Origin: Orbicella franksi
Lineage: Eukaryota
Direction of reading: 5' to 3'
Assembly: GCA_964199315.1 (NCBI GenBank)
Contig: OZ116707.1
Span: 8,494,001 to 8,558,000, forward strand
Length of the DNA: 64,000 bases
Shown: one piece after another, positions 9,875 to 28,287 of the stretch
Numbering within the stretch: the first letter of the stretch is position 1
How the letters are laid out: the number at the start of each line of letters is the position of its first letter
Made by a program: the position numbers and the translations under genes
Notes under the pieces: generated by a model
What the model saw: only the letters and a program-made list of their open reading frames with translations
What the model was told of the DNA's origin: nothing
Databases searched by the model: none

Positions 9875-11856
9875 CTGAAAATTAATAAAATGTTGGGATT
9901 GAGGAATGAACTGAAATGGTTCTTGTTATATATCATAATCTGGTGACTTACTGAAAGGTATTTCTAAAATGTTAGGTAGCATTTTTGTTGTTGTTGTTTT
10001 GATGTCTATGAAATCATTCACAGCTGATGAATGAGTGTCTGTAAACTAAATCTAAGTGGGTAGAGTAGAAACGAAACAAACTAAACAAAGGAAAACAATA
10101 GTGTAGCCATGGTACAGCTGATGTCTAAATTCAACAATTATGCAACGCGCCCGAGTTTTCCATGAACGCCAGAAAAAGTCAACGAGGTGCAGCCGAGCTG
10201 GTTACATATACACATAAAGCCTTTACTTATAAACTATTAAAAAATGTTAAAGCTAAAAGCTTGTGGGGTTGTGTACAGAATTAAAATGCAAGTTTAAACG
10301 ATAAATATGCTAAGAATAACCAAAAGCTACAAATAAAAGGAGAAAAATCATCCACATTAAAAAGATCACTGATAAATAGAGACAATAGTTAAGAATAGAT
10401 TAAATTCTCAGACCTTTGTTGATTATCTGCGTATCTTAGACGAAAGAATTAAGATCCTTAAAAGTGTAACAATTAAAGACATTTTTCAAACATGATTTCA
10501 TGTCTGTGCATTGTAGTATCGATCAACTCAATCGTCCTACCGCGTTCCAGAGGACAATGGAGTTTAAAACATATTTCACGACAAAACTTGTAGCTATCGG
10601 CCCATGCTTGAGTCTATCGGCCATAGAAAACGAAGTCGAGTAGTCTAATTGTTATGGTAGAGACTCTAAAGGATTACATTCCAAAAACTGCCGTTTCATG
10701 TGCTTCAATCTAAAAAAGAAAGGTCTTCTCTTCAAAAAGCAACCTGCGCATGATCGTTTTCTATATGGGCGATTATATTTCACCACATTTTCTTTGATTC
10801 TGATTGGTTTACTTTGATCACGCAACGTGGTAGTGTTCAGATGCGGAGGCACCACCAGCCCATAGTGCCCATCTGAGGAAAATGCCCATATGGCTAGTCC
10901 CCGTCCGTTTTTTTCAGTAAACTAGTGGGTACAACATAGTGGATTTTTGCATTTGGTTGGTTTATCCTGTTTTGTTACGAAAATATATCATATTTTGATT
11001 TTCATACCTTACATGTAGATTTCAGATTAGTGCTTAAGATCTTTACTTAATTGACAGCGGATTCCACCCCAGTTTCTGTGCATTTACATTGTTCATTTTC
11101 TTGGCGTTAGCCGAGAAATATCACCATTTGCCATAATTTATTGTTGTACTTGGTTATGGCACCAACATAACCTGGTTTAAAACCTGATGGTAAACAATTT
11201 TGCAAGGTCTGAAGAGATTAGTTCTGTACTTGTAGTCCTTTGCCCTCTATAGAGTATTATTCACTAAAATGTTCAAGGGCTCATTAGGGCGATACTTTTT
11301 CTGGTTTGAAGAAGGGCTACAGTCCCGAGAGAAATTGAGGTTAACTAGTTGAGTTGATAAGGTCACGTATAATTTGCTGAATTAGCACTACTTCATGATG
11401 TGTACGTTGGATATATATTTTGACAAAGATTTTCTGTGGAGTTGTTTCAATCTGAAAAAGAATATTTTTCCAAGCTCTCCGCTTTAGTTTGTTGGGGAAT
11501 TGCAGAGATTTCAATGTCTAAAAAACGAGAATTTAATTTCCGTGTTGTAGTTCTTTTTAATACTTTCTGAAAAGGCGTTCAATCTCAAATAAACACCCTA
11601 TCTAAGGTTAAATTTTCTATATATGTATTTCTATTCTTAATATAGAGCAGGAAGGGTTAAAATGTGGGATCAATATCAGCAGCTGGGCAAAGTCCCTTAC
11701 GTAAAAAACTTATTTAAATTACTTAAAAGTCCCCTATGTAACTACAACAATTTAAACTGTTACAATTACTGTCAGGACCCCCTATACAGTTCTGTTGTCC
11801 TAAAAGTTCCAACTTCCCTAATAATTCTTAAAATTTTTCAAGATTCTTAAATGTCT

Positions 11857-12410
11857 TAGAGGTTCGAACTTTAAGAGTCCTTAAAGTTCGAATTTTAACA
11901 GTCCTTAAAGTTCGAACTTTTAGAGTCCTTAAAGTTCGAACTTTAAGAGTCCTAAAAGTTCGAATTTTTAGAGTCCTAAAAGTTCGAACTTTAACAGTCC
12001 TTAAAGTTCGAACTTTTAGAGTCCTTAAAGTTCGAACTTTAACAGTCCTTAAAGTTCGAACTTTTAGAGTCCTTAAAGTTCGAACTTTAAGAGTGCTAAA
12101 AGTTCGAACTTTAAGAGGCCTTAAAGTTCGAACTTTAACAGTCCTAAAAGTTCGAACTTTAAGAGGCCTTCAAGTTCGAACTTTAACAGTCCTAAAAGTT
12201 TGAACTTTTAGAGTCCTTAAAGTTCGAACTTTAAGAGTGCTAAAAGTTCGAACTTTTAGAGGCCTTAAAGTTCGAACTTTAACAGTCCTAAAAGTTCGAA
12301 CTTTAACAGTCCTAAAAGTTCGAACTTTTAGAGGCCTTAAATTTCGAACTTTAAGAGTCCTTTAATTTCGAACTTTAAGAGTAATAAAAGTTTGCACTTT
12401 AAGAGGACTA
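11857..12410. repeat. 24-bp minisatellite (~23 copies), each an 18-bp palindrome TTAAAGTTCGAACTTTAA plus a 6-bp linker
   Basis: Units are in exact register from 11881 to ~12385. Linkers are GAGTCC, CAGTCC, GAGTGC or GAGGCC. Confidence 0.97.
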
Positions 12411-13142
12411 AAAGGACTAAACTTGTTCTATATCAGCACCGCTAGGACTCTTTAAAGTTGTGGAAGGCATCCGGCATAGCAACTAAAAATGGCTCGTAAA
12501 GATCTGATTCAGGCAAGTGTTCTGAAGTCAATCGGTGTAGTTGAATATCTGACTCAGTTAAATCTGACTGGCGGGTTCAATCACAAACGTATGCTTCCTT
12601 TCTCCCTCACCTCCCCCCGGCACCACCTGTCCTCGCCCGAAATAAAAAATTGACTTCTAATAGTGGGTCATTTTGTAATTCAGGCACTCCGTTTGTGTTA
12701 AACTAAGTCAATATGGTGGTGTATCAGCAAAGCGTGTAACAGGAGGTGAAACTGTTTATTTAACTCAGCAATAAACAACATATATATCAATGATTACAAG
12801 TTTATTCTTTCGCCGATTTACACAGCAATGATTCAATGTTTTTGAAATACAGATGCAATGATTGCAATGGCCAACCTGTTAAACTATCAACTTCATACAA
12901 CTTTAAAAGTTTCTTAATGCAATACTTGTAACAAAACTAAATCGACTGTCTTTAACTCCTACATGGATTCGCATTTTGGTAAAAATATTGACCCATTAAT
13001 CATCTACATATCATTGATAACTAAGGTAACTAAGGTAATTGTGTAGTAATAAAGTAGTTTCAAAAAGGTCAAAAAAGATTCTTTTCATTCAGTGGTGAAA
13101 TGCTAAAAGTTCTATTTGTTTTATTTTTATTTGTTCATTTAT

Positions 13143-16100
13143 TTATTTAACCAGCATTGGCTCTAAAATTTCCATTTTGACCATTATTTGTTCCAAGCTG
13201 CGGGTTAGCAGGCGTTGGCTTATTTCCAACTGTTTCCCCTCAGCCAGTTTAGCGTTGTGTACAACGTGGATGGACTGGTTACCGTTTGCTGTTTCCATGA
13301 TGAAGCTATGATAATAAAGCAGTGTTCTCAGAAAAAATGTGTTTAGTAGCAAGACATTGAGCTTAGTTTTTCTTATCAAATATGATTGTATCGTATGTAA
13401 CACCCATAATGAAATGGCAGCTATACCCATAATGTATAAAATATCGAGCTCATAATTTTCAGTAGAATTCCGACTACATTTCCGTTAGAAAACGATTTCC
13501 AATAATCTTCAAGCCGCAGCAAAATCCCGCGGACTGAAATGGTTTTTGAATCTTACAGTTGTTCTCCCGGGCTCATTGTTTCAGTGGTAAAGATTTAGGT
13601 TTTAAGTCGCATAATGGTTTGGTAACTTTATTTATTAGTAGTGTTTGCAATCAATTTATCGAGTGGTAACTTAATAATTACATCTTCTTCCAAGCATTAG
13701 AAAAACCAGAAAACTTTATTATGTGGACTCCTTCCATTCACTGCACGCTTACAGAACGGCTGTTAGAAAACGTGTTCAGCCAGTTGGATTGTAGCATTTG
13801 GAAGTATACTATAAGAATTCTATTAATAACCAATGGTGCATACCTTAAATCAAGGTGGATGGATTCGACGCCTTGAACATATTGCAGGGCAAGGAAGTCG
13901 TCTTTGGCAAACAGTCTCCATTTTCGTTCCCACTTCTCAAAGAGGGGTGAACAAATAATTTGGCTGCGCAATGGAGTGGGTAATCGCCACTTAAATACGC
14001 CAATGACTCCAGTCCCTTTACTTTTAATGTTGAGGGACATCTAAAGGAAGATGACATTGCGTTAAAGATTATTACTTTCCATTCCAAACCACTACTTATA
14101 TTAAACGGTTACTCGGACATTAAATCCAAGCAGGATAAGATCAAGCTAAGAAACTGAATCCCAAGGTGATCCTCTTTCTTTTTTGGAAATCGTACCCGCG
14201 TGTTTGTTTTCTTGTAGTATTTGATGTTTGGTTGGCCTATAGCCTAGTTACGTCCCCGATATCAAGAATTCGTTGATATTTCATCTGAGAACACTTTGAT
14301 ATTATAATAATTAAAAAGTGCAAGTCATAAAGGGTATTGTTATTAGTCTTAATAATGTTTTAGCAGAGAAAATCAGTTACCTTTTCCAAGGATTCCCAGA
14401 GCAAGTTCGCCCGATCTTTCTCCAAAAGGGAAAAGTGGCGCATTTGGTTGTTGGCGAATATGGTCATGTAATTGCCCTCTTCTTAGCGCTTGACCACATC
14501 CTTTGACTTGGCAGATCGTCATCACGGCATCGCAAGTCATGGTGTGAGAAGGTATCAGACAACTTCAGGAAAGAAACAGAAGTATGTTGCTCTATCAATT
14601 ATTGGAGCTTAGAATGCTTCGAGGTAACTGTAAAACTCGTAATCGAGTACCATTTGCGCTACGCAAATTATTTTTGGCCTGCATAATATATTACGTTTTA
14701 CCATTTATTATTTTTTGGGTATCCTTTAAAATTAACATTCTAACGCGCGACAGTTTCAGTAACACTCCAACTAGCGCGAGACAAGACGGGGACAAGAGCG
14801 CGCGCACGAAGCGTGAGAACGAGCGCCAAGCGCGAGGTGTACTGCAGGCTATACTCCAACAAACTATATATGAGTAAAAAATTTAATAAATGACGTTTAC
14901 GACAGAAATATAATCCTGGATATAATGCTAGGAATTATCAGGAGCCGGTACCGAATGACGCGGAAAGAGCACCTTTTCGATCACATGCGTGAGCGGTAGC
15001 GAGCAAAGCGATCAGGCAGGAATGAGTCTGGTGAAGAGGCACCCAAAAAGTTACTGTCTCGCCTCGCGGCTTCCTCTCTAGATTTCGCGCTGCGTAAATG
15101 CTAAAACATGGAATTATCTAAATCCACCTACAACCACCTACTGAACTGAAAAGTCCACTAGAATTTTGCTTTTTACGTAGTGTCAATGTTTCTCCATCTG
15201 GAAATTATGTTGTTATGTTGTTATTGTTAAGTTGTTTCCATGGGTGTCTCGTCTCATGTAGACTGCAATGCAGTCGTGTTTTCTTTCCTGTTCGGAAGGC
15301 GCGAAGCGCCGTGACTGTAGTCCTCGCGTGTGAAGCGCGCGAGCCTCACACGGGCATGTGAGGCGAAAAAACGACTGTCGGCTTTTCATACAACGAATTC
15401 GTTCTGACCGGTGGTTCAAATGATGTCACTAAGGTGTCAAAAATTCCTTGACACCTTCACTGAATGATTCGATACTTTCGAGAGTGTCTAAACTTTGTAA
15501 TTTTTTAATCTCAAGAAACAGTAAATAAACTGTCTGCATTCGCGCACCGAATCTCTGCAATTTTCATTCCAAACGTTGTCAAAACTCGTTCAATGTTATT
15601 TGCTCTTGTGCGGACAAATGACAATAATTGTTCCACTGAAGGACCTGAAGCTGCATGTGGTGAGGTGGAAGCTAACCTTATATCAACTTATTTTAAAACT
15701 GCATCCGGATTTGAGGCAATTTCAGATGGTTTAATTAAAGCCTTGCTTCGTTTTCGCAGCAGTGAAATTCACACCTTTAGCAAAGGGCCAAAGGTTATAT
15801 TACGTAACCTCATCAAAATTTCTGCGTCCCGTTGACCTCATGGATAGTTCAACGATAATCTAACAGAAAGCAAAAAAAAACAGAAACATTTTCAAACAGG
15901 ATTGAAACTCCCTGTTTGCTAATACTGATGGTTTTCTGACTTTTGTTTTATGCCTGGATTTACGCCGCGAGAGCGAAAAACAATATTCGGAAATCTGCTC
16001 CACTAGGGTGAGAGCTATGAAACAAGCGCGATTCCAGATTGCGCGAGACAGTAAGGGAAAATCATAAAACAAAATAGTAGGATAATATACCATGAAAAAA

Positions 16101-16659
16101 AAAATGAGCACTGTATTGCCCTTATTACACATCTTTCCCTGGAGAAAGTCATGTCATGAAATTGTTTGCGATTTGAGACCAAGTCATCAACATGTAAGTG
16201 AGAATGAAAAGTTGCAGACTGATAGCTCGTTTTAGTAAAAACAATGAAAATGATGAATTACGCTTAGTACTCAACGTACCTCTTAACCATTTCACCGCAC
16301 TTTAAGGGACAAGCAATTTCCCTAAGTGCGCACTCGGAGTCCTTATGAACAGCCTGTTCTCTTCTCTGTAGCTTCTCGCCGCATTCGCAATCAGTGCAGC
16401 GTCCAGTGGGAACTTTTCCGAGCAGGCGCTGCATTCCCCCTCTTTTGTACTGAGCACGTTCAATGCGAAATGGTTCTTACAGAAAGTACGGACGGGCTGT
16501 CGACACAACTGACAGAGCACAGGGCCGCTCGCCTCTTGTATAATTTTTTTTACGCAGCATCCACAAAATGTGTGCCCACAGGGTGTTGCGATTTGCGCAT
16601 CGATTATTGGGTTATAACTGCAATATAAATCAGAAGGGCCACATTGTGAAATCTTCAAA
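13143..16659 (-). pseudogene. TRAF-like RING / TRAF-zinc-finger / MATH-like E3 ligase gene, frameshifted
   Basis: Exons 16659-16280 (PCGHTFCGCC...CQLCR RING; CECGEKLQRREQAVHKDSECALREIACPLKCG), 14562-14381 (CQVKGCGQALRRGQLHDH), possible mini-exon 14284-14252, 14040-13844 (GVFKWRL...SPLFEKWERKWRLF, MATH-like) and 13305-13143 (stop). Junctions are GT-AG and phases match once a 1-nt insertion in exon 2 is allowed. Confidence 0.72.
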
Positions 16660-16857
16660 CTGGTAGAAATGGACAAAGAAAAGAAATTATGTTACGACAT
16701 TATAGCAATGGTATGTTTTCCTACCAAACATTACAAAGCAATTCCTGTGGAAGATCTTCGCTAAACCATACATAATCGAACACTTGCTTGGATGGCGTGG
16801 TAAAGCTCATCATGGCCCATCCTGTCTCCGACAACTTGTATGCGACTGACTTGTGTG

Positions 16858-16924
16858 TAGCCTGCGAAGGCTGTCTTCGGCGGAGACAAGCGACAGCCGG
16901 AAATAGGTCTACGTTTGCAGGCTA
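16858..16924. mobile_element. Short MITE with TAGCCTGC...GCAGGCTA termini
   Basis: Terminal inverted repeat TAGCCTGC/GCAGGCTA; no TSD recognisable. Confidence 0.65.
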
Positions 16925-17402
16925 ATGACGTTGCACGAGCCGATCTCGGTTCCAGTCGCCTGCGCCAAAAAATGAATCAAAATTTAAACCACGGGTCCTT
17001 TGGATGGAACGCACTAGAGAAGGGATTTATGAAATAATTTACAAGTATATTGGTGACATGTCAATGGGCCAAAATCCCGACAAAGACTATAGCTTCCTAC
17101 AGAGATTCTCTTTGGGCTCGTCACAAATTTCTCCATCTCACTCCCTGAGAAAAAAGGAATGGGAATCAAAGAGCCCCTCCCAGGGGTTTTAGGGAACAAG
17201 AGAACTGGGACAGTTATTTTTTGGGAACAGGGGATATTTTCAAATTATTTTCAGGGAACAAGGGAACTCTTGAGTAGATTGTTGGGAACAAGGGAACACC
17301 GATCTACTTTCAATAAAATATTCTTTTTAACTTTCCGAGCCCCTAAAATATAAAATATCTTACGTTCTTGAGTGTCAGGCGAAATTATTTTCGAGATGAT
17401 TA

Positions 17403-18963
17403 TTGTTACGAGCTCGTGAGAATGTTTGTTTCAACATTCACGGGCGCAGTCTATGTCGCACAGCTTCATTTCAACTTCATCAGCGTAAAGGGTCTTCTAT
17501 ACAGTTAAGTTCTACGCTTCTTTATGGGATACTGTCATTGAACAATGTGGTCTATGTGTCTGCACACGACGATAATGGAGGGATATACAAACTTACCTTT
17601 AACTGATCATGACAAAAGGTGGCTCGGCTGAGAAGATAGTGAGTAATGGTGGTTTACTCTGCAAGAACGCACACAGTTTATCCACCTTCAATGACAACTC
17701 CTTTGAATTAAGTGACACTGGAGACTCGTATATCAAGGCTTATAAACCTACAGCAGAGCAATGTTCTGTTGTAGTTGGCAATAGAAAAGACAAGAGATGG
17801 AAGTAAAGCCCAGTTTTCCCAGCCAATAGGCATCTGCTTTGATTATGACACTCTCAGTTTACCGTCGACACCTCAACAGGTACCCTCCGCATGACAAGCA
17901 GGGTCACTAGTTTGGAAGACTATTGGAAGCATTTGCATCTGTTTGGAGAGACATTTGGACTTCACACAAAGACTAGCACCTCGGTCATAGTGGAAATCCC
18001 CCAGGCAATCGAGAGGCTACAGCAAGTTTACTCCTTTGACAAAAATTGTGTTGATGCAGTTATGATCCTTATTGGTACCACAGCTGTGACACAAGGCCCT
18101 CAACGAACAACTGTTTCGTCTGTTGTCATGGAAGATGAAAGAAGGATCCTGAAGTCTCTGCGTGACATCAAGGACCTGCTTAATCATTTTACTCCAAGCC
18201 TTACCACCAAATTTAGCATCAAAAGTCTTCTAACGCTTGTGCCCCTACAGCTTGAATTCGATTACAGATTAAACAGGGCAATCAAAGAACGGTTTAAGAG
18301 GCAAAGTTTTACACCATTTGGTTACTTCACAGCTCCCAAGTCCAGGTTTTCACCACCACATATTACAATGATTTACCCAAGTTATGCCCTCCAAAGGCAC
18401 ACAAACTATCTGAAAAGCAGGTGAAATGAGGAACTGGAGAGCAATGTATGGTCAGAGTGTCCTCCAGAAAACAGTGCAAAAAATGACAACAAAGGACAAT
18501 CCAGAAACTCTGCCCATAAATTTGTATGCAGCTGACTCTCTGACTGTACAGCCCCTAGATTTCATAGTGCTGAGAGGAGCAGCAGCAGTTCCAGTGCTGC
18601 ATAGGGACACAACAGAGACTTTTTACAAACTAAGGCAGATTGTCGGTGTTAATTAAAGCTGATTCCATCAATACTCGTCAATTGTTCATAATGGCTTGTC
18701 TGCAAGAGAATGTGAGTGTTGGCATGAAAAGGGTGAAAGCTAAAGTGTTTATACAAGATCCTTTCAATCCAATGCTTTTCACGGAAGATGCAGAGAGATA
18801 TGTCGATGTGAGCAACATTGTTTGTGCCCTAACCTGCTATAACTACCGTAAAGATGCCTTAGAGGTTGAAGAAGATGATCTTATCCTTCTCCTTGATGCG
18901 CCTCACCACACCAATGAAGTCTCACTGTTACAGAAGGAAGGGATTTTTTTCTCAAAGGATTAG
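17403..18963 (+). pseudogene. Decayed gene with a beta-propeller (NHL-like) segment and a helical C-terminal region, probably transposon-derived
   Basis: Consecutive same-strand ORFs: VVYVSAHDDNGGIYKL, LSDTGDSYIKAY...SVVVGN (NHL-like), GPQRTTVSS, SIKSLLTLV, GQSVLQKTVQKMTTKDNPETLPINLY. No introns evident. Confidence 0.45.
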
Positions 18964-19647
18964 TTTAAAATGCTAAAACGAATGCTATTTGAGACTAAAT
19001 GACCAAAACGTTATCGGATGAAACCACACATACCTATACGAGTAGTCTCTGGGCTATTTTTACAGTTTGAAAGCCACTAATTAACAATTATCCTGCGAAA
19101 TCGCGCAGAATATCGCCTGATACTTAGCCGACGAGGCCGTAGCAATTTTATCCGGGCAGGAAAAAAACTCTTTTATTTACAGTTTTTTTGCTTGTTGCGG
19201 CGTACAAAATTACGTATATCGCAGGATATCTGTTATCTACGGATGACAGATATTGAGAGAATCATGACCATATTTGGACAGTTTTCCATTTTTTTGAATA
19301 ATAATATAGGATAAACGCAAAGACAAAACATGGCTGCCCTTTACTTTGGTAATTCATAGCCTATCTACAACATCGCGCCCTCAGTTAGAGAGGGTGTAGG
19401 ACTGGCAAGACAAAATAAATAAACTAAGTTAGGCATTTCTTGCTCACAAAAAGACATCTACAAGTGGTCATATTGACTGTTTCAAAAAAAAAATAGTATA
19501 AAATATTATTCAATATATTCTTTGGCGTTCGCAGATATATGGGATGTTCAGGTACGCCCATTCTGTGTTAAGAGGTCAAGGGTCTTTCTCACAGCCCTGG
19601 GAGTGCTTAGTTTTGTGTACAGTACTTTCAGGATACCCGTTAAGACA

Positions 19648-19810
19648 GAGGACGCCCTATCTCCAGCACCAAATTATGACTATTGCACAACGCTGTTTAA
19701 AAATCACGTGTAACATCTGAACAATGACAAATCCTCCGTGAAGAAACACATTTCAAAGTGCCAAAACAAAGTTCACAAAGACATCGAAATCAAGACCATT
19801 GTACCAGATG
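19648..19810 (+). mobile_element. Penelope-like element GIY-YIG endonuclease fragment, internally deleted
   Basis: PISSTKL*LLHNAV / KITCN followed by HLNNDKSSVKKHISKCQNK..DIEIKTIV, matching the Penelope GIY-YIG region as I recall it. Confidence 0.55.
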
Positions 19811-20431
19811 ACACTCACTCATTAGATCATATCATCCATTTTAATTCATATTTGTACCTTATTAATATTCTCATGGATTTTTTTAACGATTTTATATCAT
19901 TATACAGTAGTGTAAGGCCACAATTGAACTTTTGCCACTTTCCTTTGAAATGCTACTGAAAGAGAACTTCCAACGATTATACAAATTTCCTTCTTTAACC
20001 ATTTTACAGTAGTCACTTATATTACTTTTAGCCCCCACCCCTCTTCCTTCTTCTTCAACACTATCCGTTTCTATGATTGACTTTCATTTCCTACTCACTA
20101 AAAACGGCTAATCATTCTTGATTAAAGTTCCTCTCAAAAGGGCATGGAAGCGAGCCAGAACTTCAAGACCACGCGCAACCGCACCACTTGCTCGATCAAT
20201 TAAATTATGGCATGGGCCACCGATAAAACGAAAAAAACTGGTGAATTCAAGCAATTCAAGTTGAAACGAGACTGACAGCCAAATGAACAAATATCGTTGA
20301 GCACACATTTACCAAACATACAGTGAGCCGGGTACGCTCTAACACAATCTTATCTCATTAAAAAATGTTCCTTCCTCAGGGTGTTATTAATCCTCAGCAT
20401 TTACACATTTGGTGTTTTTTGGATCAGCAGT

Positions 20432-22655
20432 CTAAAGTTGATAATATCGTGGAATGATTAGAATCAAATTAGTGAACACAGAATTTAGTCCCCTCCATTG
20501 CCTCCACATTTCTTCATTCAGAAAATCTTGAAGGTCCAACTGACGGATGCCCCTCTCCCGTTTAATGTGGTACTTCAGTTGACTCCATGCCGATTCCACC
20601 TCTTGCGTGTGAATGCCTGTGAGAGGATCCACAAAATGATTTCGGTGAACAACAACCCTATGCAAAGAAACGTTAGGTACGTGAAGCGGCAAGTTCCTAT
20701 AGGCAGCCCAGTCATCTGAGTGAACCTCTGACCTCGGAAGAAGAACCCTTTGCAATATTTGAGTTAATGTCGCTCTATCTCGTCGTGGAACCACCTGGAA
20801 ATAACCGCGGCATGGGTTATACTCCGTTGAGATAACTCCAAAAACCCATATGTCGTCCCTTGGTCTTCGCCCTCGTTGATACTACAGGGAAACAATTAAT
20901 ACTCAAGATTATACGTGGGAAGTAGCACTTCTTTTGTCAACTTCACTGGGCATTACTGTAATGCTTAAAATTATTTATTAAATGATTAAAGGTTTAACTG
21001 GAAATACTGGTTTCAGTTGTGTTAAGGTTACATATGTAGCATGTACAAGACCCTGACTTACCTTGGATTTATGTTTAAACTGGCTTTCGTCGCATTTTAC
21101 AATGTACACTCTACCCCCGAATGGAATAACGGGTCTATCTTGTAGATCTCTTCCACAATAATGCCGAAGTAATGCGTAGATGTTCCCGACAGTATTCTTC
21201 GACAGAGTGAGCATATTTGCAACAGTCGTACGTAGCTCACGAACGCTCCAGAAATACATACACAAGAGAATTTTTCCCAACGGGACTCTTGACAGCTCTC
21301 CAAAGAAACTTCCAGTTCGGAGAGATTTCTTACGTCGGCAGGTAGAGCACCTCCTATGTGAAAAAGAAGCAACACATGCATTTTAAAAATAAATGTCTGT
21401 TCTTTCAGGCCCTGATTACAACCATGGTGCTAGGGTACCTTAGGACTCCCGCCTTTCTTTTTCTCCTTTGGGGGAGGGTAGCTAGGGTAACCTTAGCTGC
21501 GCACCAGGTAGCCTGCGTAGCAGACGTTTTCAAAAAACGCACAACATTATTTTGTGCCATAAAAAGCAAGGTGACAATTCGCAATTCAAGATTATTTCAG
21601 TTTGGCTTTGGATAGAACATTGTCAAAATTTTCTTCGTAAAGTTTGTCGATCGTCACTGTCGCATTGGAGAATTGTTGATAGTTTTCAGTCAAATTTATG
21701 CCAAACTAAGGAAAATTAATTGTTTTGGAATCGTGACATCTTTGAAGTAATTCAGAGCTCTTTGAGTTTTAATGCCATAGCATGCAAGTGGTCAGGAGGT
21801 GGTCATTTATGATGGCATTACTTTCGAGTAATAATTTAACTTTTATTTCCGGAAGAGCGTTACAATCAGAGTGGGACTCCCATCTCGATTACTAGTTTAC
21901 TCTATGACACCCTCAAAAATAATCACGAATCGGGGATTGATGTATCATCAAAAAGTCTCACCCGAATTCACAAAGCGAGGAGGAGACTCCCTGTTGTAAG
22001 CTCGATTAACAGCCGCTGTTCGGGAAAGGAGCCCGCGCTCCTCCCCCGAAGGTACGTGTGGCCCGCTTCCGAAAACCCTTACCCATTTATGACCAAAATC
22101 TGCGATTTTCCATACCTTATTTATTTTTGACCTGACCAAAAATTTGATACCCTATTTATGATCTGACTCTTACGTAATTAGGGAAATGGCTTTATCTATC
22201 ATGCGTAGCAGGCGTTAAATGGGGTAGAGGGCAAAGCGCAGATGGGAGAAGAAGGGCGTGATGAAGAAGTAGCTTCTTCTAAAAAAACCGAATTGAAAAC
22301 GAGTGCAAAAATCGATACCCTACTTATTAGCAAAATGGCGGCAAAATGGCTAAAATCGATACCCAATTTACGACCAAAACGGCTGAAAAACCGTACCCTT
22401 TGGGGCCGCACATACCTATATAGCCCATGTAAGGAAGTAGCCCCCCCCCCCCGGGGCTTTAGTACTGCAATTTTTTAAATAGAATACTAACCATAGATAC
22501 CCATCCATGTGATCTTCATTCCTCTCAGTCAACTCCATTGCTCGATTGCATGGCCTGCATCTTAGTGGATTGGCCAGCAAATTGTGACCCTGCAACCATC
22601 GAATCAACTCTAAAATAGGACCGTTTGAAAGGGTCGTAATATCAATGAGGTTCAT
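20432..22655 (-). CDS. Merlin (IS1016/ISXO2-like) DDE transposase, 3 exons, 301 aa, apparently intact
   Basis: Exons 22655-22492 (164 nt, TG|GTTAGT), 21353-21062 (292 nt, AAG|GTAAGT) and 20881-20432 (450 nt) join in frame with no stop. Zinc finger CRPC...WRCSTC; SLRTGSFF; catalytic VKCDES, IWVFG, HSDDWAAY, VDPLTGIHTQEVESAW. Confidence 0.9.
22050..22452 (+). repeat. Dispersed repeat inserted in Merlin intron 1
   Basis: Contains internal ACCCTATTTATGACC-type repeats, ends in a C-run, and is homologous to 7962-8075. Confidence 0.75.
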
Positions 22656-22846
22656 TGTTTGCCCAGTGCTGCGATATTGACAGTCTCGACGAATGGTCTC
22701 TAACACGGTACTTCCTGTAAAATCTCCAAATATGGTAATGATTCCAAACAACTCTGCACTGAAACATGAGTACCGTGGACCACGCGGCACATCGTATTGT
22801 CTTCCTTCGAATCGTTTAGTGTGGTGTACGCAGAAATTCCATAAGA

Positions 22847-25800
22847 ATGTCGGACAAAGGTGGTCGAAAACCAAGAGCCAGGAATCTCTCCAGAACTTTT
22901 ATACTTCTGAGATCAGATGATTCGAATAGTCGCGTTCCTAGATCAGCAACGCTTAAGACACTCAAGGCAAGTGGACGAATAAAGGAGATTGAATTTAGCA
23001 ATAATGCGACATCGCAGCACATCACTGAGTTGGTCATGAATGCCTTTGGTCAACTTAACCAATCAAACATTTCCAGGTACTAGAACTGAAGCTATAACAT
23101 AAATATCACTTTTGGTCTTTACAACAAAGACTTAATCCTGAGATTTGTGTTGTATTGTTATCAATATCTTCTTTTTTAGGCTTGTCTTGTATAAGACTGT
23201 TGGAAACACATCCGTTTTAAGCCGGGCTGGTAGAGCTGGAAACATCTGCGGAGACACCCTCAAGTGTATTTATAAATCTCGCGCAAAGGTGTTCCTTCGC
23301 TTAGAGGACGGTAAGAACATCTAAATCGTAAGCGACGTAACATTGAGCATAAGAACTCGGTATCCTGTTCGGCTGTTAATGTAGCTGTCAAATCACACTT
23401 TTATTTTACAAGGTAGCATTATTGGTGATCATATTTGAACGCAGCTAAACGCTTTGACGAACGAGCCATCGATAAGATAATTGGTGTATCTATCATAGAA
23501 ACTAATAAATGTAAATCATTAATAATTTACTGTCTTGCAACAGAGGAATTGTCCGAGTCAGTGCAGGGAGGGGCTGTTACCTGGGATGAAGATGACAATG
23601 GTAAGTACAATTTCAACACTGACTTAAAGCATCAAAATCATTCCCTTCGCGCTAAAGGACTGTTTGGCTAGAAAAGTGTGAAAATTTCAGCTTTCGCCAT
23701 ACAAAGGTTTGTTATGTTATACTTTTTATTATCAATAACGGCATCGCCGGTCAACACAGTAAGACGAATCGAGCAATAATTCTGTATTTACCTTTTGCAT
23801 GTCTTTGCTTCAGCGAAGATCATTCGATGAAATGTGCCAATGTGCAGAAAAGGTTTTACTTTATTAAAAGTGGTTGAACTGATTACACTTTTGCGTTCAA
23901 GATTCAGTCATGAATGACTCTCCTGGAGGAAGCAGAGTAAGGCAAGCAGAAAGGGAAATCTTGACGAAAGCAAGTAAGTAATAAAAATTTCAAAAATATT
24001 TAGAATGGCAAATGAAAGGAAATGCATGTTAACATAACTCACTGGGGAATACTTCATGAATGTAATAATCTACTTACAACAGGTGAATCATCCAAGTCAG
24101 TGGAGGAAGAGGCTGTTGACCAGGATGAAGATGAAAATGGTAAGTGCACGTTCAACAACTCAAACCTTAACTGACAAGTAAAATCATTTCCGTCGCCCTT
24201 AAGGTCTGTTTTGCTAGATAAGTGTAAAAATTTCGGCTTTCGCATACAGAAAGGTTTGCTTTGTTATACCTTTATTATCGATAACGGCATTGTCAACGCA
24301 GTGAGACAACTCGAGCAATAATTTTGTCTTTACCTTTTGGGAGCAAAGATCATTCGATTAAATGTGCCAATGTGCAAAAAAGTTTGACTTTACCAAAAGT
24401 GGTTGAACTGATTACACTTTTGTCTTCAAGACTCAGTCATGAATGGCTCTCCTGGAGGAAGCAGAGTAAGGCGAGCACTGGAAAGGGAAATCTTGAAGAA
24501 ATCAGGTAAGCAATAAAAATTTCAAAGATATTTAGAATGGCAAATGAAAGGGAATGCGTGTTAACATAACCCGCTGTGGAATACATGTGCTTGATGAATG
24601 TAAATAATTTACTTGCAACAGGTGAATCATCCAAGTCAGTGGAGGGAGATGCTGTTGACCAGGATGAAGATGAATGGTAAGTGCACGTTCAAAAAGAAAA
24701 TAACCAAATGACATCTAGAAAGATTCTTTATAAGAAGCAAGTAAAACAATAACAGCATGTGGCACAACGTTTTGTTTCAAGGCGATGCCACAACAAACGA
24801 TAGTAAGTGCTTCTCAAGATGGAGGGGGAATGTGGCTATAACAAAAAGTCTTAACGGTTGCAAGCACACTGGTCGTAACCAAATTTTTGATTAATATTGT
24901 TACATTTCTTCCTTAAAGCCTCAATCATGAATGATTCCCCTGGAGGAGGTAGACAAGGGGAAGCAGACGGAAATCTCAAGGAAAAAATTGAGTGAGTTGA
25001 GTTTAAAATATTTAACTGAAAATGGTATTGATAAAGATTGTATCTACCAAAAGCCGCTGCTCAAAAATTATTTAATATTTTTACCACCAAGTGAAGAAGA
25101 GTCCCAAGCCAGAATATTTGGACAATTTACATGTTTCCTTCTACTCCAACATTGTAAGTGGGGGAAGGAGGTATTTTAAAGGTGCCCACGCAAAGTGTCC
25201 CGATTACTTATATACGCGATTGTAGGTTTAAAACTGATTAACAAAGCAAACAGCCGACAATTATCATACAAAATGGCACGGAATAACGCCTGATACTTAG
25301 CTGACGAGGTGATATTCCGAAAGATTGAGCAGGATAATTGTTTCCATATTCAACAAAATAATTGTCAATGAAGCTCATTTTTCTTTGCCCATGTGGCGTT
25401 TTAAAAGATTTCGGATGAATCCTCGTAACTGAAGTATACCACATAGCAGCATCTGTTACGGATAAATGGGGCTTCATAGCCATATATGGAAAATGTTACA
25501 ATTTGTTAAATAGTGAACATTGATTTCTGCAAGATTATTAGGTGGTAGAGACGTTCATCTTAAAAGGCATTGCTATCTTTCCCTTCTGCCCTGCTAAGAA
25601 GCCCTAAAGGAACTTTTAACATTTCAAAAAGAGGGAACAGTTACGATAATTTTGACAAAAATAAATTAATAATTAAACTAACAAACAAATACATAAATAA
25701 ATAAATAAATAAGTAAGTAAATAAATAATTAAATTCACACCGGTTGTGAGCTAAATTTTTTATAGATTTAGTTTTTTTTTTCTTGAAGGTACAAACGTGG

Positions 25801-26664
25801 ATGATTCAACAAACGGAAAAAAAGAAGAAAAGAAAGCAGTCGAGATCACGTAAGTAAAAAAATAAAAATACCCATTACCCTGGAGATGTAATAACTTGCT
25901 TGCAACAACAGTCACCAGAATTCATTACTGAGGCCTAATGAGATGATAGTACGCACTTAGACTGTAACAGGAGTGATCTCTAGATCTCGGGGAAACGAAA
26001 TACAAATACTTAATGAAATGGCATTTCTACTAAAAAGGTAAAAGATGTTTATTTCTGCTCATGTCCGCTGGAAAATCCCGGTCTAGATAAGCAGCTGAAA
26101 CATGAGGAGCTAACTCTATCTGTTTAGCTACTTTTATGTTTTAACGTTAGTTTTCCGTAGGTTTTCGTGTTGTTGCTGTAATTACCTGTGATTAAGCACT
26201 TTAGTTAGCTTTTCTTTGGTACACTGTTTGTGTGCGCATTATTCGATTGCTTGTACTTAGTACTATTGTAATTTAAAATTCTAACGGCAATGTATTAGTG
26301 TAAGTTGAACTTGTAATATTGACATAAATTCAAATTCGCACTGTAACGAACACTTGCAACTGAAGATGATCGATGATTGATCGAAACATGTCTTGCAAAC
26401 TCAAAGTTGTCCATTTTTTATGTTTATTTTTCCACAGATCTTCCATTTAGAGTCATAGTCAGCTCTGAAATTCCAACTAAAAAAGGCCGCAAAAGTGAAG
26501 ACTCACTAGACGTGTGCAACATCTGTCGAAGCAAGAAGAAAACGGGCCACATATGTTGCACCAATTGCAAGCAGTGGCAACATTTCAAATGTGCCAAAAT
26601 TAACCTTCAGGAAGCAAAAGAAATCGGAGGGCATATCAAATGCAACAAATGCAAAAACCAGTGA
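22847..26664 (+). CDS. Multi-exon gene: unidentified N-terminal domain, acidic repeated linker, basic NLS-like stretch and C-terminal PHD finger
   Basis: GT-AG exons 22847-23076, 23180-23310, 23544-23600, 23902-23973, 24083-24139, 24431-24505, 24622-24676, 24919-~24991, 25092-25153, 25789-25849 and 26438-26664. Phases are consistent except exon 7 (-2 nt) and exon 8 (-1 nt); skipping both gives an open frame. PHD: CNIC...CCTNCKQWQHFKC...CNKC. Confidence 0.7.
23480..24995. repeat. ~540-bp tandem duplication (~3 copies) carrying an exon pair
   Basis: AAGTCAGTGGAG..GCTGTTGACCAGGATGAAGATG and TCATGAATG.CTCTCCTGGAGGA recur together with the flanking intron sequence. Confidence 0.88.
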
Positions 26665-27039
26665 CAAAGACTACAACAACTACACTTAGCGAACTTTTGT
26701 TAAATACATACCGACTCGCAAAAGCTCCTAACACAATAGTGATTACTGCGAACACCTAGATAAGGCTATAATGAAGTGATTTGAGTGACATCAGTTTGAG
26801 TTGATAGAAGAAGAAAAAGGAATGCCTTAGTTCGACGGAATTTTAAAAATCTTCTGGGCCGGTCATGGCTAATATTTTTTCCTTGCAAGATATGGTAACT
26901 TTCATTCAGAAACATTAAAAGTTCATTCAAGTTTCGCAAGTAGAGTATTGTCTGTTTATGGAAACATATTAGTGGAGGTATATCACAATTCTTATAGAAT
27001 TTGATGGGAGGCAGTGCGTTATTTTGTTGCCGCGACCGG

Positions 27040-27240
27040 TGAGTGGAGTAGAGTCAAGTTGCGTGATAAATATGTAGTAGAGTCAATACAGGTTGAGAAG
27101 AGTCTAGATGCATGTGTTTGGTAGAGTAGAGGGTCGAGTAGAGCTGCGTGATTTAGTACAGTCGAGAAAGGTAGGTTTGTGATGAGTAGAGATGCATAAG
27201 GTAATGCGATTTTCGAGTAGATGCAAGAACTCTACTACTG
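27040..27240. repeat. Degenerate (GTAGA/GTCGA)n pentamer tract upstream of the Tc1 ORF
   Basis: GAGTAGAG and GTCGAGTAGAG motifs; reverse complement of the pentamer type at 6555-7330. Confidence 0.6.
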
Positions 27241-27369
27241 TTTGAGTTCAGCGATTTTATAAATATTTCGTTTTCCAGAATCATGAAAAAAAGGAAGACA
27301 ATCTTTTTAATAACATGTTCTTACGCTAGAGGGACTTGACTATTATGTTGATCAAACGACGTTGAGTGG

Positions 27370-28287
27370 ATGAGTCGAAGTTTCGAAACTACACCTAGAG
27401 AAGTTGATCAAAAATGGCGACACATTTTAAGTATACTAGAATTGAGGGACGAAGAGGGCTCATTTTCCTCACGACATCTGATGGAGCGTACAGGAATTCA
27501 TCATGTCACCAACCGAACTGTTAGGCATTTACTAAATAGAAATGGTTACCCCTTCTGTCAGGCATGCAAAAAGGGGCTAATGAGTCAGACAGACAAAGAC
27601 CAGAAAGTGGAGTTTGCCCGAAAAATGCAAGCAGAATACCCCCCAAGTGTTTGGACAGATTCTGTCGCTTTCTATTTGGATGGTGTCTCATTCGTGTACA
27701 AGATTAATCCGCTGAACTAAGCTCGTGCCCCAAAAGGAAGAGTATGGAGGAAAAGATCTGAAGGCCTGACACGAAGGTGTTTGGCAAAAGGCAGTAAATC
27801 CGGAACAGGAGGAAAAGTGGCCAAGCTCATGATAGCAAAAAGTCACAGCAAAGGAGTGCTGGTTTGCGAAAGATACGAGAAAATAGATGGAAACTGTTTC
27901 GCATCTTTTATTGACCAGCATTTCAACACTATGTTTGAATGATCATGCAAAGGATTAAGTCGACTTTGCCTGCAAGACAGTGATCCTTCACAAAACAGCA
28001 AAGCAGCCCGTGAGGCTATGGTTCTTTGCCATTGTGAACTTTTAAAAATCCTGCCGCGAAGTCCAGACTTGAATCCAATAGAGAACATTTTTCACATTGT
28101 CACTAAGAAGTTGGCAAAAGATGCGCTTGAAAGAGGCATAACAAGAGAGTCATATGAACAGTTTTGTGAAAGGGCACAAAGAATGATCCGTGGTATTTCA
28201 CAACAACTGATAGATAGAACTATACAGTCTATGAGTGTTTGTGTGGCCGGCATAATATGAAATCGTGGCGAAAGACTGAAATATTGA
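27370..28287 (+). pseudogene. Tc1/mariner DD34E transposase with in-frame stops
   Basis: RTVRHLLNRNGY, FYLDGVSF (D1), QDSDPSQNS (D2) and RSPDLNPIENIF (E), with 34 residues between D2 and E. Three internal stops. Confidence 0.92.

Follow-up and report, generated by a model that had tools for sequence, protein, structure and literature searches.

We describe a locus in the genome of the coral Orbicella franksi at which a Merlin transposase gene on the minus strand and a second gene on the plus strand, here called ORF2, are arranged head-to-head. The stretch analyzed, referred to as the window, comprises 64,000 nucleotides of contig OZ116707.1 (C10:8494001-8558000 in a 497-Mb assembly, forward strand), and coordinates without a contig name are positions in this window. 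ORF2 is our label for the family defined by exons 1 and 2 of the plus-strand gene. We propose that the locus is probably one copy of a two-gene clade of scleractinian Merlin (IS1595-like) elements that encodes a DDE transposase together with ORF2. In the proposed organization, the first gene would consist of three exons and encode a DDE transposase that combines a putative C2C2 zinc ribbon at its N-terminus with the catalytic residues D143, D208 and E248, while the second, usually directed away from the transposase, would encode a basic N-terminus, a ubiquitin-like domain of ~100 amino acids and, in relatives, a low-complexity tail. By analogy with other DDE systems, ORF2 might serve as an element-encoded helper, i.e., an adaptor binding the transposase or host nuclear or ubiquitin/SUMO-type factors. 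That the stony-coral Merlin clade is a true two-component system, in which the transposase needs or is regulated by the ubiquitin-fold adaptor ORF2, is a further step that we put forward tentatively, as possible rather than probable.

According to a survey of the superfamily, Merlin and IS1595 elements carry a single transposase gene (PMC8101967), and our literature search found no two-gene Merlin. A preliminary description of this stretch had suggested an undescribed two-component Merlin lineage with a PHD-finger chromatin reader as the partner of the transposase. A conserved, mostly head-to-head partner that co-diverges with the transposase is indeed present in at least six lineages and in two other coral assemblies, but this partner is not a PHD-finger protein.

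Linkage and Co-divergence of the Two Genes

The whole genome was searched with a profile built from ORF2 exon 1, and the significant loci were then compared with transposase matches, with an ORF2 locus counted as linked when it lies at most 30 kb from a Merlin transposase match. Seventeen significant loci were found. Fifteen of them are linked, against a chance expectation that we estimate at ~0.2 linked loci (~100 transposase matches in 497 Mb). In eleven of these 15 loci both genes are head-to-head at 2-30 kb (C10:8516847, 8729794, 23473226, 6989214, 8811609 and 7237979; C9:14159890; C7:5144640; C1:6183128; C4:23338795; C2:27080735), and in four they lie on the same strand at 1-24 kb (C14:11475186, C1:35079885, C10:389409 and C10:5632278). 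The recurrent head-to-head co-occurrence that the preliminary description had named as a check is thus borne out for exons 1-2 of the partner. The linked transposases represent at least six lineages that are 50-66% identical to the window enzyme (A', B, C, D, E and F denote Merlin lineages of this genome). The start exons face each other at ~1 kb in lineages A', E and F, at 191 bp in the window and at 15.7 kb in lineage B. Ten of the 17 ORF2 loci are located on contig C10 (0.39-23.5 Mb), eight of them within 4.8-8.8 Mb, and this clustering suggests local hopping or serial segmental duplication.

The pairing extends to other corals. In the ENA contig L043, the three transposase exons stand head-to-head with a gene whose first 89 residues are those of the Acropora cervicornis protein KAK2562420. 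The transposase exon 1 of this contig (8875-9039) contains an in-frame stop, while the facing ORF2 corresponds to this annotated protein, and ORF2 may here outlive its transposase. Contig L044 covers that locus too and, being 99.7% identical, differs at too few sites for a comparison of selection. A further coral assembly contributes L045, whose transposase has the same three exons, shares 78-80% identity with that of the window and is separated by ~255 bp from an ORF2 of 51-60% identity. The transposase of L045 is flanked by a 19-nt inverted repeat, which was discarded as being at chance level by our estimate. At the P0249 locus there is no annotated IS1595 gene, which is uninformative because the L043 transposase also escaped gene calls of this type.

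To compare the histories of both genes, pairwise identities between first exons were obtained separately for the transposase and ORF2 of seven pairs, those of other coral assemblies included, and were compared by a Mantel test. The correlation is high (r = 0.91), with 2 out of 5040 permutations reaching the same value. Since the identities of the first exons correlate across the seven pairs, transposase and ORF2 have long been inherited together while both stayed open.

The Merlin Transposase Gene

In the window, three exons on the minus strand, separated by GT..AG introns, are spliced into an uninterrupted IS1595/Merlin DDE protein of 301 amino acids, in agreement with the spliced transposase starting at 22655 of the preliminary description. 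Exon 1 (22492..22655) carries the ATG at 22655 and the first CxxC of a putative zinc ribbon (CRPC, residues 33-36); its homologues, which are 44-80% identical, adjoin ORF2 in L031, L037/38, L041, L043 and L045. Exon 2 (21062..21353), with an AG acceptor and a GTAAGT donor read directly at its borders, contains the second CxxC (CSTC) and the first catalytic aspartate, D143 in KCDES. Exon 3 (20432..20881, including the stop codon) contributes D208 (HSDDW) and E248 (QEVES) and matches the Pfam family DDE_Tnp_IS1595 (PF12762; E 3.6e-12, 47 bits versus a cut-off of 27). The catalytic triad is intact, and the same blocks occur in the lineage-B and Acropora copies. The putative C2C2 zinc ribbon CRPC…CSTC (residues 33-60) is interrupted by intron 1, and the separate exon peptides gave no Pfam match. 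Transposase models of 200 amino acids in the style of RefSeq start inside exon 2 and therefore lack this N-terminal ribbon.

Intron 1 (21354..22491, minus strand) is enlarged by pieces of a very abundant repeat, while the same intron measures ~490 bp in the paralogue L003. Over 21944-22540, where these repeat pieces lie, the depth of RNA contigs climbs to 10^3-10^4 and chimeric joints are numerous. The nearest paralogue of the window pair is decayed.

The Partner Gene ORF2

The start codons of both genes, at 22655 and 22847, are separated by a spacer of 191 bp (22656..22846), a distance already given correctly in the preliminary description. This spacer holds the right arm of an inverted repeat discussed below and has no polyA RNA depth. 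ORF2 exon 1 (22847..23076, plus strand; 76 codons plus 2 nt) encodes the basic N-terminus and the first half of the predicted ubiquitin-like domain, and exon 2 (23180..23310, plus strand) the second half. When the donor of exon 2 is left unused, a stop follows four codons further (after …RLEDGKNI). Together both exons encode ~120 amino acids, and they form the only conserved part of the proposed plus-strand gene.

The exon-1 profile retrieves 114 representative clusters at E<1e-3. The family includes annotated "uncharacterized proteins" of Orbicella faveolata (XP_020618107, 273 amino acids), Acropora palmata, A. cervicornis and Montipora capricornis, and the ORF2 exons of lineage B are 100% identical to an O. 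faveolata scaffold. Exon 1 ends at the same arginine, corresponding to a phase-2 intron, in most aligned members. Homologues of exon 2 are present in L003, L004 and L045, and for a sister lineage a spliced product of exons 1 and 2 (P0121, 143 amino acids) is recorded from an assembled contig of 920 bp. Pfam searches with ORF2 and eight relatives, relaxed to E 10, yielded nothing relevant, and a feature search of the ESM Atlas with ORF2 returned unnamed eukaryotic clusters only. The CCDC106 family (PF15794) gave no match in five ORF2 relatives even at E 10, and the PF15794-like matches of the genome (C8:159654, C5:14994390 and others) coincide with no ORF2 locus.

Beyond exon 2, the tails of the relatives are of low complexity, mostly Ser/Thr/Pro-rich and lineage-specific, and this part of the protein appears to be fast-evolving. 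A PHD finger or any counterpart of window exons 3-9 is absent from all ORF2 relatives examined. We also considered the window motif DSVMNDSPGG and the acidic exons E3/E4 as homologues of the C-terminal LLQSPF or D.SP.G of relatives; the scores fell within those of shuffled controls, with the intron phase being the same, and the assignment was rejected.

The ~100-residue domain was modeled with AlphaFold (predicted local distance difference test 77, predicted template modelling score 0.65). The modeled order of elements is beta-alpha-beta-alpha-beta-beta-alpha-beta. Across three structure searches, the top rows were almost all ubiquitin-like (UBL)/beta-grasp or related domains (UBL, RA, FERM-F0/F1, DCX, PB1). 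Foldseek against the PDB gave the RING1B RAWUL, TBCE UBL and FERM F1 domains at E about 1e-3, VIA-align gave Ufm1, talin F0, the RalGDS RBD, the USP7 UBLs and doublecortin at Z 5.5-7.2, and the clusters of the AlphaFold database gave N-terminal parts of sponge, cnidarian and fish proteins that have a HECT domain, with E down to 5e-7. The models thus make a moderately strong case that ORF2 adopts a ubiquitin-like (beta-grasp) fold. Its predicted topology is that of the domains of RING1B (RAWUL), USP7 (UBLs), talin (F0), RA/RBD and doublecortin, whereas the 5-19% identity in the match lists amounts to no sequence similarity and there is no Pfam match. Compared to the named UBL families, ORF2 reaches a Z of only 5.5-7.2 and has no evident conjugation motif, and membership in any of them is not established.

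Mobility of Sister Lineages

Lineage B consists of six transposase copies of 95-99% identity on six contigs, which have a common right end and internal deletions with differing breakpoints. The inverted ends measure ~1.2 kb and are imperfect. A 10.3-kb derivative on C13 has the termini GGATC(T/A)CTCA… and is flanked by a perfect 8-bp target-site duplication (TSD), GAAAGGAA. The GG termini and the 8-bp TSD fit the published hallmarks of Merlin (5'-GG termini and a TSD of 8-9 bp; PMC8101967), and lineage B is a mobile Merlin element. ORF2 lies inside its full-length copies (>21 kb), which make up three of the six. The preliminary description had proposed to define terminal inverted repeats (TIRs) and a TSD by aligning copies, and this succeeded for lineage B (GG TIRs, 8-bp TSD) but not for the window copy.

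In each of the lineages C, D and E, the ORF2 region is found twice, on different chromosomes and with 98.7-99.2% identity. In lineage E (L037 versus L038), an identity of 98.7% runs unbroken over transposase exon 1, the spacer and ORF2. A second gene that lies inside the TIRs and is copied along with the element is hence found in lineage B, and the data for lineage E are consistent with it; in the window lineage ORF2 possibly lies outside, given inverted-repeat arms that bracket the transposase alone.

Lineage-B loci include C9:14145001-14170000 (L011+L004+L005), C7:5117001-5150000 (L023+L008-L010) and C13:23034001-23054000 (L016/L017). Near the right terminus there are tandem repeats of 'AACGAGTCTCGTT'. 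The C9 copy is adjoined tail-to-tail by a further copy with an internal deletion, and on C7 an open reading frame (ORF) for a RING finger lies between ORF2 and the transposase (index 16187-16675, transposase-oriented).

Duplication, Termini and Expression of the Window Copy

The only close relative of the window copy is located 213 kb away and is 99.0% identical (45 differences in 4532 bp). Both belong to a segmental duplication of at least 10 kb, in which at least window 13200..23491 is collinear with C10:8718116-8730438 at 96-99% identity, with 2.1 kb extra in the second copy where it corresponds to window 18960. On the right, the duplication breaks off at 23491, in the intron following ORF2 exon 2. 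Since both belong to this collinear segmental duplication, transposition was not the origin of the window pair and its twin. A 4.5-kb block that the window has in common with C10:8725902-8730438 was evaluated as a candidate element and rejected: there is no TIR or TSD at its ends, and its left "end" is the 2.1-kb indel in the longer duplication.

A 26-nt inverted repeat (23/26 matches) with arms at 19259..19284 and 22719..22744 is a candidate for degraded TIRs. The right arm lies 64 bp upstream of the transposase ATG and reads 5'-GG if extended by one base; of the two arm starts, one is GG and the other AG. The repeat is far beyond chance (~2e-4 expected by our estimate). As a terminus of a miniature inverted-repeat transposable element or Merlin family it was rejected, with the motif occurring genome-wide only at the window locus and its duplicate and with no TSD. 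No TSD was found at the window copy, neither at 18960/23491 nor at the inverted-repeat arms (flanks ATATTGAG versus AAACAACT). The preliminary description had reported neither bounding TIRs nor a TSD; the latter absence stands, while the 26-nt repeat now offers candidate termini.

Transcription was assessed with assembled RNA contigs and depth from several runs (polyA; random-primed, X1; raw-read, X23). The polyA depth is zero over 22541-23137, i.e., the intergenic stretch and exon 1, at most a trace in one run over exon 2, and zero or near zero over the transposase exons, so that in three runs neither gene rises above near-zero depth. Coverage from the random-primed run X1 is even and unspliced over the transposase and ORF2, shows the alleles of the second copy and ends at the duplication breakpoint. 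This coverage behaves like DNA and gives no information on expression. From the raw-read run X23 almost nothing was placed outside the abundant repeat. The bidirectional promoter of the preliminary description finds no support, with polyA depth at or near zero over the spacer, exon 1 and the transposase and with the genes 1-16 kb apart in other lineages. Because it lacks a TSD, has a twin that stems from segmental duplication and shows no polyA RNA for either gene, the window copy is probably immobile and silent.

Downstream Exons and the PHD Finger

Starting at 22847, ten canonical GT-AG exons can be chained on the plus strand, not the eleven of the preliminary description; its canonical splice sites are otherwise seen in the transposase introns and at all ten of these exons. 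ORF2 is followed by six mini-exons (23544-23600, 23902-23973, 24083-24139, 24431-24505, 24622-24676 and 24919-24991) that encode acidic repeats. They sit in three tandem units of ~540 bp with two mini-exons each (23540-25000), and the third unit is frame-shifted, with stop codons in exon 8. The tandem unit is unique in the genome, the sequence 23492-24640 is single-copy, and no homologues of the mini-exons were found beside any other ORF2. The donor of exon 9 (25789..25849, plus strand) is read through by RNA contigs of three runs, one of which reaches 26133. The last exon (26438..26664, plus strand) codes for a true PHD finger of the C4HC3 type (29 bits for Pfam PHD, versus a cut-off of 24).

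The polyA RNA contigs of two runs support the junctions 23973>24083, 24139>24431, 24676>24919 and 24991>25789. Spliced in this way, the frame from 22847 has no stop up to the end of exon 7, but exon 8 brings three, the first at 24932. The summed length of 1038 nt is a multiple of three, which brings exons 9-10 back in frame by coincidence. The junction of exons 2 and 3 is absent among the RNA junctions listed; RNA contigs of low depth are present over the end of exon 2 as well as over intron 2 and exon 3. In a hypothetical isoform, skipping of exons 7-9 would leave the frame open.

A copy of the PHD exon that includes 0.9 kb of 3' flank (26465-27382) lies at C5:15012166 (L006 5167-6577) with 87-94% identity, and Merlin is absent there; the exon itself is 89% identical. 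This shared stretch stops where a Tc1/mariner-like ORF (HTH_Tnp_Tc3_2) starts, at window 27370. The PHD exon is not part of the Merlin/ORF2 unit. Together with the acidic mini-exons, it represents single-copy local sequence that is transcribed separately or at most fused secondarily. The plus-strand gene of the preliminary description ends in a real PHD finger, but one that lies behind three stop codons. As a chromatin reader serving the transposase it is not supported, with only exons 1-2 conserved and no relative with a PHD exon; the C5 copy is an occurrence of a PHD homologue without Merlin, one of the points that the preliminary description had itself named as contrary evidence.

Weighing the Explanations

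Several observations weigh against the two-gene interpretation. The window copy has neither a TSD nor an unambiguous TIR, and its inverted repeat brackets the transposase alone, with the inner arm in the 191-bp spacer; should the arms be true TIRs, ORF2 would be located ~100 bp outside the element in the window lineage. ORF2 is missing from three of the six copies of lineage B and from the 10 kb around an Oculina transposase copy, and two ORF2 loci (C10:8431999 and C10:4838478) have no transposase nearby. The Mantel result shows co-inheritance and not function, because any tightly linked DNA co-diverges. The fold match is middling, and a function of ORF2 cannot be read from a predicted fold alone. 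Finally, the two window copies differ by six non-synonymous and three synonymous changes in the transposase and by two and zero in ORF2, without a sign of purifying selection. The inverted-repeat arms, which may place ORF2 outside the element in the window lineage, are the main reason why our confidence in the two-gene clade is not higher.

These points lead to the rival that we consider unlikely but the foremost, namely that ORF2 is no element gene and belongs to a host family, or a family of another transposable element (TE), beside which this Merlin clade sits or inserts, with duplications or composite elements carrying both. In that case the Merlin element of the window would span 3.5 kb (19258-22745), with the 26-nt inverted repeat at its ends. 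An inverted repeat beyond chance that encloses only the transposase and reads 5'-GG at its right arm speaks for it, as do the copying of the window pair by segmental duplication instead of transposition, the existence of ORF2 loci without transposase and of the converse, and the recurrence of the predicted fold in cellular proteins, among them HECT-domain proteins, at their N-terminus. Yet the arms have no TSD and their motif defines no repeat family. In lineage B, moreover, ORF2 is well inside a TSD-bounded element and is removed by different deletion breakpoints in different copies, while interchromosomal copies are continuous across both genes and co-divergence extends over seven pairs including other coral assemblies. 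Quite improbable in our view is a co-domesticated pair of host genes kept for a cellular function, an option raised in the preliminary description. Both ORFs of the window are intact despite the lack of a TSD and the decay of neighboring TEs, and a similarly tight pair, that of L045, exists in another coral assembly; but neither gene has more than near-zero polyA depth in three runs, constraint is not apparent from the ratios of non-synonymous to synonymous changes that separate the duplicates (6:3 and 2:0), and the nearest paralogue is decayed. The sister lineages, with two to six near-identical copies on different chromosomes and, in one case, TIRs and a TSD, look mobile. Still more improbable is a single gene from 22847 to the C-terminal PHD finger that acts as chromatin-targeting partner. 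Such a gene could draw on ten exons with GT-AG borders, a frame open over exons 1-7, a length divisible by three, the low-depth RNA around exons 2 and 3 and the conceivable exon-skipping isoform. The RNA-supported junctions, however, place three stops in exon 8, exon 1 has no polyA depth, ORF2 relatives have neither the PHD nor exons 3-9, and the tail exons have no significant similarity to the tails of the family. The duplicated copy stops before exon 3, and the PHD exon has been duplicated separately on C5.

Comparison with Known Systems

The two-gene arrangement represents a new variant of Merlin, with a predicted ubiquitin-like-fold protein as partner. With Merlin and the bacterial IS1595-IS1016 elements (Feschotte, 2004, via PMC8101967), the coral clade has in common the DDE_Tnp_IS1595 domain, a putative zinc ribbon and the D..D..E triad, here with 64 and 39 residues between its members, and sister lineage B adds 5'-GG TIRs and an 8-bp TSD. 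In contrast to the surveyed Merlin elements, the coral clade has a conserved second gene and a transposase with two conserved introns, and lineage B exceeds 21 kb, with inverted ends of ~1.2 kb compared to 24-462 bp (PMC8101967). As a working analogy we propose the PIF/Harbinger elements, i.e., cut-and-paste DDE elements in which a second, separately transcribed gene travels along. Their transposase belongs to another superfamily, however, and their partner is Myb/SANT-like whereas a ubiquitin-like one is predicted here. A helper role for ORF2 would hold by analogy. With RAG1/RAG2 only the idea of a DDE enzyme with a neighboring partner gene is common; RAG is derived from Transib, not from Merlin, and the PHD finger of the window lies outside the partner protein.

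Few DDE superfamilies, Harbinger being an example, have accessory proteins, and Merlin would join them with a second gene that is conserved and co-diverges. Such a gene would also give a testable function to the coral-wide "uncharacterized proteins" of Orbicella, Acropora and Montipora. If the two-component reading is true, coral Merlins with a helper gene can reach a giant size (>20 kb). For annotation, genes of the ORF2 type beside Merlin should be flagged as TE-associated, and no single PHD protein should be annotated from the window exons that follow ORF2 exon 2.

Neighboring Sequences

The decay of neighboring TEs noted in the preliminary description is seen at 17891-18963 and in the Tc1-like fragment at 27370. 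The former comprises three consecutive broken ORFs (177, 76 and 107 amino acids), none with a Pfam match, and belongs to a repeat family with at least ten copies of 84-89% identity on C7, C9, C10, C11 and C12. The sequence 11663-13158, with an internal repeat array at 11797-12414, has an inverted copy of 95.6% identity at C10:8737916-8739362, beside the duplicated Merlin copy. Within the duplicated segment near Merlin, a C3HC4 RING-finger ORF is located at 16302-16676 on the minus strand; it may be related to that of lineage B, or both may simply be two of the numerous RING genes of corals. Elsewhere in the genome, another Merlin lineage with a transposase 62-63% identical has inverted transposase-like fragments 4-8 kb upstream of each intact gene; its copies lie at C1:35099234-35104002, C15:19073129-19077929, C14:11458032-11462837, C9:25952457-25960883, C8:360399-365120 and C173:7365-12178.

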